From Macrostomum lignano (taxonomy: Eukaryota): DNA of 64,000 nucleotides. Every line of letters starts with the position of its first letter. The first letter of the stretch is position 1. Made by a program: the position numbers and the translations under genes. Under the pieces are notes generated by a model. That model made no database searches and was not told the DNA's origin. It saw only the letters and a list, made by a program, of their open reading frames with translations. The DNA lies in contig NIVC01000423.1 of assembly GCA_002269645.1 (NCBI GenBank), forward strand, positions 1 to 64,000, given 5' to 3'. This document shows, one piece after another, positions 5,903 to 19,442 of the stretch.

Positions 5903-8900
5903 ATGCATTTTCTCCAATTATTTTTTCTCTCGAGTGTCTTTATCGTTGGTTTAGCCGTCATAAAACTAATAGAATCAGCTCCGACTCTTGGCGAGTTGTC
6001 TTCTGTTGATGGCGGCAACAATTATGGCCAGCCAGGCGAAATTGTCTGCCTTGGCCCGAAACATGCGGTGAGTCTGGTTTGAGACAACTGCAATCGCAGA
6101 CAATGGCCTGATGCTGTATGCACTGCTGTGTTAACTGAGATGTCACAAACAATGGCCTGATGCTGTATGCACTGCTGTGTTAACTGAGATGTCACAAACA
6201 ATGGCCTGGTGCTGTATGCACTGCTGTGTTAACTGAGATGTCACAGACAATGGCCTGGTGCTGTATGCACTGCTGTGTTAACTGAGATGTCACAGACAAT
6301 GTCCTGATGCTGTATGCACTGCTGTGTTAACTGAGATGTCACAGACAATGTCCTGATGCTGTATGCACTGCTGTGTTAACTGATATGTCACAGACAATGT
6401 CCTGATGCTGTATGCACTGCTATGTTAACTGAGATGTCACAGACAATGTCCTGGTGCTGTATGCACTGCTGTGTTAACTGAGATGTTGCAGACAATGTCT
6501 TGACACATGTCAGATCAAAATTCTATGAGACTCTTGATTTCGATAAATTTCTATACACCAGCTATAAGTCAAATAATTATATCAGTGGTATCTTAATCCT
6601 TCCATGTTTGTAGCTTCCAATTTGTTGCAGGAAACTGTCCAAACAATATTGGAAGTTCTAATCAATTTTAAGATCGAAGAGGAACTACTTTACAGCGTCT
6701 GCTTCAAGGAGAAGAACGCTGTGGCAATGCTTATCAGTATTCGCCTGCCCTGGATAGAAGCAAGTGCTAACACAAGCAGTTTCAATCTCAGCGTCACCGA
6801 TGACGCCAACAACAAGCCGCTTGAGCACACGCGCTGCTTAGCCTGCTCATCATCGACTCTGCTCATCAATATCAGCATACCTATCGATCCATACAAACCG
6901 TTCAACGTGAAAATTGTTCTAACAAATGAAACCGAGGTGGTTTATTATGGACTTTACCTTCCAAGTAAGGTTTTCAATTTAATTCACTCTAGATCTCAAG
7001 CGTGCAGTGATGATAAAATAAGAGCATGATAAACCGAATTGCACTTTTAGGCGAGTTCAGAACTCGCAAACCGATGAGCCGACAATCTACGGCTACATTC
7101 TGGAGGGCCCGGTGGACATTGGCCCAGCAACTGCTGAGGACACCCGACAGCTCAGTGACAGACTGGTGGACAGGCTGGTGTGCCTGGCCACCGCGCCTGC
7201 GGAACCGGGTGGCAAAGTCAGGGCCTTTTTCAGAAAATATGTTGCCAAGAAGCAACAAGTAAGCTGTCATAGTGTCTGTCATATTTTCTGTCATCGAATC
7301 CGTCATTGCGTCTGTCGTAGTGTCAGTCATAGTGTCTGTCATAGTGTCCGTCATATTGTCTGTCCTAGTGTCTGTCATATTGTCTGTCCTAGTGTCTGTC
7401 ATAGTGTCTGTCATAGTGTCTGTCATAGTGTCTGTCATAGTGTCTGTCATAGTGTCTGTTATATTGTCTGTCATAGTGTCTGTTGTATTTTCTGTCGTGT
7501 GTCTGTCATATTGTCTGTCATATTGTCGGTCATAGTGTCTGTCATACTGTCTGTCATCGAATCTGTCATTGTCTCATCTGTCTGCCAGTTTCTGACACTG
7601 TGGGTAAGCGGTAAGTGGCAGACGCGTCTGACTCTCGAGCCGCGACCCCTATGAGTGCGTGTCTGCGTACAGTATTGGCGCGCTTGCATGTGCTCAGCGC
7701 TCAGCAGCACAACGCCCAATATTCGCAGGCTAGCTGCGAGGCAGTCTGGTGCAAGCTGGACATGCTGAGCATTCTCACACCGGACGAGTGGCACGAGATG
7801 TTTCAAGAGCTCGTGACTAACGAAGACAACTATCCCAAGGTAAAATGAGCTAATCCTGATATTTAAGCTTCCTAAGAACAGTTTTCTTAAAACGAATTTG
7901 TAATCGCTTGCAGATAAGCATACATATGATTCAGGCAGACCCCCGAGTTCTACATCTAGCAGGTGGGATTTTGCACGAATCTTTGTGACAGGAGCATGTC
8001 AATTTTGGTGTCGGGAAGACGTCAATTTGAGTGTCGGGAAGACGTCAATTTTGGTGTCGGGAAGACGTCAGTTTGAGTGTCGGGAAGACGTCAATTTTGG
8101 TGTCGGGAAGACGTCAATTTTGGTGACGGGAATACGTCAATTTGGGTGTCAAAGAAGACGGCAATTTGGATTATTTGAATTTCGGGAAGACGTCAATTCG
8201 GATGTCGGAAAGACGTCAATTCGGATGTCGGGAAGACGTTAATTTGGTGTCGGGAAGACGTCAATTCGGATGTCGGAAAGACGTCAATTTGGATGTCGGG
8301 AAGACGTCAATTTGGGTGTCGGGAAGACGTCAATTCGGATGTCGGGAAGACGTCAATTTGGGTGTCGGGAAGACGCCCATGTTGAATGTGCGCCAGTCTG
8401 GTTTAATTTGAGCTAGTGAAGAGCGACCTAATTGCATTTTTAAACAACTTTCAGGTCTGAAAGAGCAATGCATGAAAGCCAAGCAACATTATTTAATCAA
8501 TCAGGGAACTACTGTTGACCAAAGCGCTGAAAAACTGGACGAATGCGACTGCGACAGAATGGCTACAATTGGCTCTACTACTGCTGCTACCCCCATACTA
8601 GTTATAGTAGTAGTTTCTTGCGCTGCAATGGCGTCAGTCTTGTCTGTGACCTTGCTGGCTCTGGCTACTTTGTTAGGTGAATATCTGCATCGCTCTATAC
8701 CTCCCTACATCTCTCCCTAACTTCCTTCGTCTCTCTATACCTTCCTATCATCTCTCCTAACTCCCTACATCTCTCCAATCTCCTTAAGTCTCTCTATGGC
8801 TCCCTACATCTCTCTCTCTCTCTCTCTCTCTAGCTTCCTACATCCCACCCTTCTTGGTGCTTCTTTATCTGAGAAATCTTTTCATCATTTTGAAGACTTT

Positions 8901-17500: not shown

Positions 17501-19442
17501 AGTCCACATATTTCTCCGCCAGGAATGTTTGCGTAGCGAATCATAGCTACTTTTCCTATTTGCACTCCGAATAGGAGAATTAATTCAAGCTCAAAATCAA
17601 CTTGAGAATTAACTCATGGCAGCCAGGCTAGCTGTCTTCACTGTCCTTTAAATTTGCCATAAACGATTAATTATCTCTACAACCCTTTCATTTAGAGAGC
17701 AACTAAATTTGCCATAGACGATTGATTATCTCTACAACCCTTTCAAAGCGCATTCCGGCAACAATCGCATTTCATACTCAGCATCCGCACTATGTCTGGG
17801 CCATAGACAAGGGAAGTCAAAAGGGTACAATAATGACATGTACCGATTTTTTTCGGCAGCAATTGCTCTACTAAGCTTCAGCCGCTACGCGGCTTCAGCT
17901 TACGCAATTGCTGCCGAAAAAAATCGGTATATATCGTTACATTGTAAAAGAATCGCCCTGTCAACTATAAGATTCATGGGGGGGTGCTAATATGCTAATA
18001 TGTTAAGGCTCATGGGGTATTGCTGAAGATGCTTTGAGCGGAAGCTCAATGGGATGCTATATTTCCTATATAGCTGATATATTTCAAATTTCAATATATT
18101 TCAAAGGACCCGGTGTCCACAGGACTCTTTTATAAGGCTATTATAGATAACTGGCTTTCAGGTTGCATGCTTTTTGCGTTTACCATACTTTTCTTAAGAC
18201 ATGGGTCGGCAAACTACGGCCCGCGAAGCCTCTATCCGGTCCTTTGAAACTTCACAATAGCAATCCAGCCCGCTCAAGGTTTTTGTCTTCTCATCTGTCC
18301 TCTCCCGTTTCTACTCTCCTCTGCTCTCTTCCATGTATTTCTATTATCTTCTATCTCATCTCTTCTCTCATCTCGCCTCTTAACTCCCTCCTCTATTCTT
18401 CCTTTCTCATCTGGCCCGCAGCAATGATCTGGATTCTTTATCTGGCCCTTAAGGTAAAAAAAAGTTTGCCGACCCGTGCTTTAAGAGATAAACAATAGTG
18501 ACATCTGTACAAGATCAAAACGTACAGGTAGTTGATTATTCAAAAAATTTAATAATCGTTGTCTGTGAGTTGTGGGTAAGTAGGTTCCTTTGTATGTATG
18601 TGGGTATGTATGTGGGTAGGTAGGTTCCTTTGTTGTCTCCCAAGGAGGGGCGCAGATTGCTAGTCCATATACTAAAAATGAGTTGTCTGTATGTATATAT
18701 GTGGGTAGGTAGGTTCCTTTGTTGTCTCCCACGGAGGGGCGCAGATTGCTAGTCCATCTACTAAAAATGAGTTGTCTGTATGTATGCATGTGGGTAGGTA
18801 GGTTCCTTTGTTGTCTCCCACGGAGGGGCGCAGATTGCTAGTCCATCTACTAAAAATGAGTTGTCTGTATGTATGCATGTGGGTAGGTAGGTTCCTTTGT
18901 TGTCTCCCAAGGGGGGGGGGCGCAGATTGCTAGTCCATATACTAAAAATGAGTTGTCTGCATGTACGAGCGTATGTATGTATGTGGGTAGGTAGGTTCCT
19001 TTGTTGTCTCCCAAGGAGGGGCGCAGATTGCTAGTCCATATACTAAAAATGAGTTGTCTGCATGTATGTATGTGGGTAGGTAGGTTCCTTTGTTGTCTCC
19101 CAAGGGGGGGGGGTGCATATTGCTAGTAATTTTCTAATTTTCAGGGGATTCCTACATGTAGTATTTCCATGACTTCCGTTATTTTGTCAAATTTGAGCAA
19201 TCTGGTGAAATCATCCTGAATTCCCATCTAATTTACACACAGGTGTTAATCAGCAAGTCAGATTACTTCAACGATTGGTAATGCTGGAGAAGCATCGCTG
19301 CACCCTGCTACAGCCCAGCTCGCAATCGGAATTGAACGAACAAATTGGCGGAATTCTGCGCGACGAGTCCGAGACCAGCGGCGGACGGAAGCTGCTGCTA
19401 CCTTCGGTGTCCACAGGACTGCTGCAAGATTCTTTTGTATAA
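11539..19442 (+). CDS. Uncharacterised type I membrane receptor B (519 aa), paralog of receptor A, with SEFIR/TIR-like tail
   Basis: Exons 11539-11667, 12418-12766, 13261-13511, 14074-14149, 14303-14545, 15099-15410, 19243-19442 splice by GT-AG into an uninterrupted 1560-nt ORF. Signal peptide ...LILSLLCVLLTAVRPAWT; TM LLLLALLLPVGVAIVAVGCLIYVLY. Confidence 0.8.
11745..11960. repeat. 17-bp minisatellite, receptor B intron 1
   Basis: Unit ACTAGGTCACTGACTC(T/C). Confidence 0.9.
12790..13210. repeat. 30-bp minisatellite, receptor B intron 2
   Basis: Unit ACACCTCAGTGACAGCTTGAGCACAAGGAC. Confidence 0.95.
13738..13945. repeat. (TATC)n microsatellite
   Basis: About 50 near-perfect TATC copies. Confidence 0.98.
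15493..15793. mobile_element. Fold-back MITE-like element with a TAACCC telomere-type core
   Basis: Long inverted arms (GGGGTCGC..CACAAG(A/C)TCGAAAAG / CTTTTCGAGCTTGT..GCGACTCC). Right arm has three ~47-bp tandem units. Centre is CTAACCCTAACCCTAAACCCTAAACC. Flanks AAATAGT/AAATTGT. Confidence 0.6.
15887..16082. mobile_element. hAT-like MITE
   Basis: TIRs CAGGGGCGGATTTA / TAGATCCGCCACTG; flanks CAATCTC/CAACCTC form a near-perfect TSD. Confidence 0.6.
17151..17560 (-). pseudogene. Decayed C-terminal part of a Crypton/DUF3504-type tyrosine recombinase
   Basis: Across frameshifts reads HG-R..FVTR/LAKAGFDNQAIPLMTGHKNSSSVDVYK/RRDMDCVARMSACL...FHNCTFNFYGK*. This is YR box II (H-x-x-R, TGH, Y) plus an FxNCTFNF tail. 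Confidence 0.7.
18200..18478. mobile_element. hAT (Charlie-like) MITE
   Basis: TIRs CATGGGTCGGCAAACT / AGTTTGCCGACCCGTG, subterminal GGCCCGCG/GGCCC motifs, and 8-bp flanks TCTTAAGA/CTTTAAGA. Confidence 0.7.
18504..19126 (+). mobile_element. Head-to-tail array of six ~85-100 bp Helitron-like units
   Basis: Units begin TCCATATACTAAAAATGAG, carry a (TGTA)n/TGTC tract and a CTCC-nnn-GGAG hairpin ~12 nt before CTAG. CTAG ends at 18663, 18752, 18841, 18933, 19034 and 19126. The array is flanked by A and T. Confidence 0.6.

Follow-up and report, generated by a model that had tools for sequence, protein, structure and literature searches.

A tandem pair of divergent, lineage-restricted genes of Macrostomum lignano that probably encode type I single-pass membrane glycoproteins

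We have characterized two adjacent genes of Macrostomum lignano, here called gene A and gene B, which very probably represent an anciently duplicated tandem pair that is taxonomically restricted to M. lignano and encodes type I single-pass membrane glycoproteins. Both genes lie in a stretch of 64,000 nucleotides (positions 1 to 64,000 of the forward strand of contig NIVC01000423.1; GenBank assembly GCA_002269645.1), referred to below as the window. An initial annotation of the window had described two adjacent seven-exon genes of about 520 amino acids each, and had proposed that their products are receptors of an IL-17-receptor-like family with SEFIR/TIR-like cytoplasmic tails. The end points given there, 5903 (start codon of gene A) and 19442 (stop codon of gene B), hold, as do the adjacency of the genes, their common strand and the exon count of gene A, whereas gene B has eight exons and encodes 552 amino acids. 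The SEFIR/TIR assignment did not survive: every sequence-level membership test that was run (Pfam, phmmer against PDB sequences, hhalign) was negative.

Gene B occupies positions 11539-19442 on the forward strand and has eight coding exons. It is already held in GenBank as the hypothetical protein BOX15_Mlig002524g1 (P0002, 552 amino acids), and the translation of the eight spliced exons is identical to this record, residue for residue. All exon borders are GT-AG, and position 19442 is the final base of the stop codon. The gene set of the assembly was derived from RNA sequencing (RNA-Seq) data through StringTie, TACO, TBONE and TransDecoder (PMC5730564), and because the annotation was built in this manner, the gene B junctions are presumably transcript-derived. 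A 476-amino-acid model of gene B (exon 3 from 13303, read-through to 15424) was ruled out by the acceptor at 13261 in P0002 and by the eighth exon. The intron preceding exon 8 is 3.8 kb long and has no counterpart in gene A. At 15500-15786, this intron (intron 7) contains nested inverted repeats with arms of 33-34 nt that are 91-100% complementary; they flank a short CCCTAA-like, telomere-type run (approximately 15573-15625), and a 49-bp tandem array comes next. This segment may be a small foldback or miniature inverted-repeat transposable element (MITE)-like insertion.

Gene A occupies positions 5903-9371 on the forward strand, with an ATG at 5903, a stop at 9371 and seven exons whose introns are all GT-AG. 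In the splice models of both genes, exon 1 ends in phase 0, exon 2 in phase 1 and the exon encoding the transmembrane helix in phase 1, as had been stated in the initial annotation. The peptides quoted there were likewise all recovered, namely the CSS...YGLY block, IYGYIL/LGYVL, DRILVLL, RRILLIVVVS, LGYQLAVLD and ASASKVLILD.

Judged by alignment and gene structure, A and B are tandem, highly divergent paralogues. The local alignment of the two ectodomains has a score of 66, compared with 34.1 +/- 5.4 for shuffled sequences (z = 5.9), and none of 300 shuffles scored as high. In BLASTP of A versus B, significance is reached only by the CSS...YGLY...GY.L block (E = 7e-4), and the global alignment shows 21.6% identity over 458 aligned columns. 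Six introns are shared, with phases 0,1,0,0,1,1 in gene A and gene B alike, and they fall in the same or nearby alignment columns (A/B: 56/56, 179/176, 260/271, 313/304, 329/329 and 407/418); gene B has one additional intron within the tail. Columns conserved between the two proteins include a C-x-GP motif, an internal cysteine, CSS, YGLY, GY.L, SC....WC and a CD motif directly before the transmembrane helix. The paralogy proposed earlier is thus borne out by the BLASTP segment, the ectodomain score and the matching intron phases, although the tails alone are not significantly similar. No more paralogues were found within the 64-kb window by tblastn with A and B.

The predicted topology is the same for both proteins. 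In 19-residue Kyte-Doolittle windows, hydropathy exceeds 1.6 only at the N-terminus and in one internal segment, at residues ~325-350 of A and ~350-365 of B. The ectodomain holds four of the five N-x-S/T sequons of A and all seven of those of B; the conserved cysteines are also concentrated there, and the predicted cytoplasmic tails are 150-170 amino acids long. These features fit type I single-pass membrane glycoproteins with a signal-peptide-like leader and one transmembrane helix, and the order of signal peptide, ectodomain, transmembrane segment and cytoplasmic tail given in the initial annotation agrees with the hydropathy and with the placement of sequons and cysteines. Both proteins have a Y-x-N-L motif close to the membrane, in B as V-L-Y-T-N-L. 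Since the motifs lie on opposite sides of the transmembrane-exon intron in A versus B, this likeness is probably coincidental.

As far as sequence methods can tell, the family does not extend beyond M. lignano. When B was searched against 1.84 billion representative proteins with phmmer, its own cluster alone was returned. Word-indexed protein searches, whether started from A, from B or from an A+B profile, found M. lignano models only; the matches of the profile were four M. lignano models of gene B and nothing else. Pfam hmmscan of the full proteins gave no match for A and only sub-threshold noise for B, and hmmscan of the isolated ectodomains and tails returned no family at E <= 10. Against PDB sequences, the A+B profile had 0 matches at E <= 10, and a phmmer search of the full set of PDB sequences with either tail produced only chance matches (UBE2S, TrkA, LysR) with E values of 0.3 or worse. 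The view that the ectodomain is unrecognizable and lineage-specific was therefore upheld, with no Pfam match, no PDB sequence match and no relatives beyond M. lignano. Other taxonomically restricted genes of M. lignano, for example the family reported in PMC5816591, resemble A and B in having no outside homologues, no Pfam domain and a hypothetical-protein label, and in owing their second copy to a genome duplication that took place recently in the DV1 line. The PMC5816591 family and the A/B pair are unrelated in sequence as far as compared.

Structure prediction was carried out with AlphaFold2 on 3-sequence alignments for A and B, the sole alignments obtainable. The resulting low-confidence models are beta-rich at residues ~60-185, continue with helices up to the transmembrane segment and show strand-helix alternation in the tail. 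In the B tail, DSSP assigned E392-397/H400-411/.../E440-445/H453-464/E468-472/H487-508, which amounts to three strands; in the A tail, it assigned E402-408/.../E436-442/H446-454/E460-464/H469-479/E485-487, or four strands, both at a low predicted local distance difference test (pLDDT) score. The beta-alpha alternation read from the tails in the initial annotation is therefore present in the predicted secondary structure, although with only three to four strands, at low pLDDT and in a form generic to many alpha/beta folds. It had also been proposed that tails predicted as disordered would speak against a SEFIR/TIR fold; a low pLDDT from a 3-sequence alignment does not equal disorder and decides this point in neither direction. 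Foldseek searches of the low-confidence A and B models against the PDB gave no match at E <= 1e-3. The top matches, immunoglobulin (Ig)-like sandwiches for B versus PYR/PYL-type abscisic acid (ABA) receptors for A, were non-significant and mutually inconsistent, and were treated as meaningless.

As a working model, we regard A and B as cell-surface binding proteins. They would reside in the plasma or secretory membrane, with an ectodomain that, going by the low-confidence models, may consist of a beta-rich N-terminal half followed by a helical membrane-proximal region. The conserved cysteines in the C-x-GP, CSS and SC....WC motifs and in the CD motif before the transmembrane helix would hold the ectodomain together, and the ectodomain would have a binding partner outside the cell. 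The short tail, in which hydrophobic strands seem to alternate with amphipathic helices, could act as a protein-interaction module.

Several observations weigh against this reading of A and B. The AlphaFold2 models have a mean pLDDT of 31.5 (B) and 34.6 (A), no residue exceeds 70, and the tail blocks range from 21 to 45; because these models are unusable, the structural statements above rest on low-confidence secondary structure. In the shuffle test, the two tails show no significant similarity (z = -0.35), and their MAFFT alignment shifts with context, so a common tail fold is an assumption. The exception is a C-terminal amphipathic helix (RL...E..R..LL), RLVMLEKHRCTLLQ in B, which pairs with the corresponding helix of A in all three alignments. 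The gene identifiers (Mlig) were not found in searchable paper texts or supplements for expression, localisation or ligand. Gene A is unannotated in both GenBank copies, that of the window contig and that of NIVC01000106.1, even though this annotation draws on RNA-Seq data, and for this reason it may lack transcription. Lastly, nine of the 11 exon substitutions between the two gene A copies change the amino acid, which equals the neutral expectation in a tiny sample.

These last two points favor the alternative that gene A of the window is a pseudogene or untranscribed relic and that gene B alone is working, which we consider quite possible though not probable. It also draws on a defect in exon 3. 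The duplicate locus (L002, on NIVC01000106.1) reads AGCCCGACA where the window reads AGCCGACA at 7079-7080; L002 carries the CCC pattern at 4195-4220 and lacks the CC pattern. This deletion of one C is the sole indel in the 1547 nt of gene A exons compared between the window and L002. With canonical splicing of the window copy (donor 6964, acceptor 7051), exon 3 is off frame and a stop is reached at codon 249. For gene A, exon 2 does end in phase 1 and the IYGYIL frame that had been noted in exon 3 is present, but because of the missing C the two are not continuous in the window. An in-frame product of 513 amino acids is possible by way of alternative sites, and requires the weak donor AAG/gttttc at 6969 together with an acceptor at 7061. 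In contrast, the L002 copy (3122-6856) retains an intact open reading frame (ORF) of 515 amino acids in seven exons with all twelve splice sites canonical, and without selection such a frame would not have lasted through so long a divergence from B (~22% identity). Moreover, the assembly is built from long reads and the deletion falls within a homopolymer, where it may be an error. A gene predictor run on an independent, older assembly caught gene A exons (P0001), and P0001 reads through exon 3 in a manner that requires one C more than the window has. The one-base deletion either arose recently as an inactivating mutation in one of two redundant copies or is an indel of the assembly. Exon 7 of gene A is 100% identical at the DNA level between the window and L002. 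Identity between copies is 99.2% for gene A exons versus 98.75% for intron edges, and 98.8% versus 94.2% for gene B; the copies are too recent and similar for such comparisons to be informative on selection.

It is unlikely, although conceivable, that A and B are instead rapidly evolving surface proteins of some specialised tissue (e.g. reproductive, adhesive or secretory) that function in recognition or adhesion and use the tail for sorting or anchoring. The extreme divergence of A from B, the lack of conservation between their tails and the failure to find orthologues elsewhere are in keeping with this explanation, and rapid evolution of reproduction-related genes in Macrostomum is reported in PMC7336406. 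Against it, the texts and supplements searched gave no expression data on A or B, and the reproducible alignment of the C-terminal amphipathic helix suggests some constraint on the tail.

The original proposal, in which A and B are IL-17-receptor-like proteins whose tails are divergent SEFIR/TIR domains (STIR superfamily) and would bring in an adaptor of the Act1 or MyD88 type through homotypic contacts, now appears very unlikely. The architecture is compatible, since the IL-17 receptor family (IL-17RA-RE) also consists of type I single-pass proteins with tails of similar length and predicted strand/helix alternation, and the beta-alpha alternation is seen in both low-confidence tail models. 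Toll/IL-1 receptors (PF01582/PF13676) are likewise single-pass proteins whose cytoplasmic module is small and looks alpha/beta. However, hmmscan of the full proteins and isolated tails matched no SEFIR (PF08357) or TIR model of Pfam at E <= 10. For profile-profile comparison, a SEFIR profile was built from aligned PDB sequences (IL-17RA, 4NUX; human IL-17RB, 9OT1; mouse IL-17RB, 3VBC) and a TIR profile from a two-sequence alignment of TLR2 (1FYW) and MyD88. Against the solved SEFIR domains, hhalign gave the B tail a probability of 0.7% over 24 columns and the A tail 1.0% over 39 columns. The 24-column alignment of the B tail sets its SASKVLILD on the SNSKIIVLCS strand of IL-17RA, the same stretch that had been singled out in the initial annotation, although without significance. 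Among the PDB matches of the SEFIR profile, the chains ranking after the IL-17 receptors were those of the bacterial 'Sefir domain protein' (5Y8F, 5Y8E), and a 74-residue fragment of 5Y8F served as a positive control. It reached a probability of 85.5% (E = 5.7e-6), so the test is able to see very distant true SEFIR domains. Probabilities against the TIR profile were 0.5% for the B tail and 0.1% for the A tail. Since the bacterial SEFIR fragment itself scored only 0.3% against TIR, these tests judge family and not superfamily-level fold, and they are blind to kinship at the latter level.

Other observations also run counter to a SEFIR/TIR tail. No TIR or SEFIR chain was present in the best 50 Foldseek matches listed for either low-confidence model. 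Three to four strands are predicted, compared with five in SEFIR and TIR domains, and the A tail has only ~110 residues from the DRILVLL strand to the C-terminus. On direct reading of the tails, neither TIR box 1 (F/Y-D-A-F-I-S-Y) nor box 2 (R-D-x-x-P-G) was seen. Unlike IL-17 receptors, the ectodomains match no IL-17R or FnIII family of Pfam at E <= 10, and unlike Toll/IL-1 receptors, they have no leucine-rich repeat (LRR) or Ig domain by Pfam. Neither an IL-17-like ligand nor a SEFIR adaptor was seen in the window ORFs examined, no genome- or proteome-wide search having been made, and no paper in the literature collection searched joins SEFIR with flatworms. There is, finally, only a slender chance that A and B are founders of a Macrostomum-restricted receptor family with a new-fold ectodomain and a tail that is a cryptic minimal STIR-like or other new alpha/beta signalling module; if so, they would constitute a lineage-specific innate-immune or neuromodulatory receptor system that is invisible to sequence methods.

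Table 1. Exons of genes A and B and the exon 3 C-run, in window coordinates
Feature	Position	Strand	Description
Gene A exon 1	5903..6067	+	ATG and signal-peptide-like leader; ends IVCLGPKHA, phase 0; hydropathy peak at residues 1-20; duplicate exon at L002 3122-3286
Gene A exon 2	6631..6964	+	Part of the predicted beta-rich ectodomain; ends YYGLYLPS; strong donor CAA/gtaagg, phase 1; best A/B BLASTP segment
Gene A exon 3	7051..7258	+	Ends KKQQ; acceptor tttag/ at 7051; 7051-type acceptor also in P0001
C-run in gene A exon 3	7079..7080	+	CC here versus CCC in the duplicate locus; frameshift or assembly indel
Gene A exon 4	7729..7839	+	Conserved SC....WC motif; phase 0 to 0; aligns with SSCGEAWCIYD of gene B
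Gene A exon 5	7914..7962	+	49 nt; phase 0 to 1; also in the second copy
Gene A exon 6	8455..8676	+	Juxtamembrane CDCD motif and predicted single transmembrane helix; ends in phase 1; hydropathy >1.6 at ~325-350
Gene A exon 7	8914..9371	+	Entire predicted cytoplasmic tail, 152 amino acids (DRILVLL..ANIIF..KVFFLLL..), and stop codon
Gene B exon 1	11539..11667	+	ATG and signal-peptide-like leader; ends LSCRGPNNL, phase 0; matches P0002
Gene B exon 2	12418..12766	+	Predicted beta-rich ectodomain; ends VKVYGLYFI, phase 1; matches P0002
Gene B exon 3	13261..13511	+	ESPNESLDSSRPNRDWIATLGYVLRV; acceptor caacag/AAAGTC; matches P0002
Gene B exon 4	13584..13682	+	SSCGEAWCIYD; matches P0002
Gene B exon 5	14074..14149	+	76 nt; phase 0 to 1; matches P0002
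Gene B exon 6	14303..14545	+	Juxtamembrane DCD motif and predicted single transmembrane helix ALLLLALLLPVGVAIVAVGCLIYVLY; ends in phase 1; P0002 and hydropathy
Gene B exon 7	15099..15410	+	First part of predicted tail, RRILLIVVVS..LGYQLAVLD..ASKVLILDD..SDSEEN; matches P0002
Gene B exon 8	19243..19442	+	C-terminal 66 amino acids of predicted tail and stop; carries the RLVMLEKHRCTLLQ helix; matches P0002

Directly upstream of gene A are tandem copies of a MATE (PF01554) transporter at 87-1914 and 3215-5119, the first truncated by the start of the window. Downstream of the pair, on the minus strand, are a Med28-like gene and an L51_S25_CI-B8 gene. Minisatellites were found at 6097-6503, 7264-7569, 7998-8375, 9410-9972 and 10499-11138 (periods of 49, 12, 23, 21 and 16 bp, respectively) and at 11738-11931, 12797-13218, 13730-13950, 18604-19127 and 20114-21000 (17, 30, 4, 89 and 28/55 bp). 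They occupy several introns and intergenic spacers, and their copy number varies between the duplicated loci; the introns do hold the repeats that had been described between the exons. Farther along the window, the region 24000-32000 has a GC content of 0.29-0.34, compared with 0.42-0.66 in the rest. It is followed on the plus strand by a large gene at 32644-48141, with a Virilizer N-terminal domain in its first ORF, and by a bZIP_2 transcription-factor ORF at 50236-51360. An EML-type gene with a HELP motif, an EML beta-propeller and repeat-filled introns lies on the minus strand at 54290-60868, and a weak endonuclease/exonuclease/phosphatase match at 62360-63145 (plus strand) may be a fragment of a non-long terminal repeat (non-LTR) retrotransposon.

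Existing database models of these loci contain errors. P0001, named 'Multidrug and toxin extrusion protein' in the older assembly, is an artefact that fuses the upstream MATE gene to exons 1-3 of gene A. Two UniProt models of gene B copies, P0004 and P0005, carry the name 'Protein kinase domain-containing protein'; Pfam shows no kinase domain in P0004, and no Pfam domain is precomputed for P0005. Relative to P0002, both models miss the segment that exons 4 and 5 and a portion of exon 6 encode, and both have C-terminal residues not present in P0002; they look like mis-predicted and mis-named models of gene B. The practical outcome of this work is a correction of annotation, in that neither of the duplicated loci has an annotation for gene A, a real-looking gene of seven exons. 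The A/B pair adds one lineage-restricted membrane-protein family to the flatworm genome, a result that would carry more weight only if the proteins were signalling receptors.

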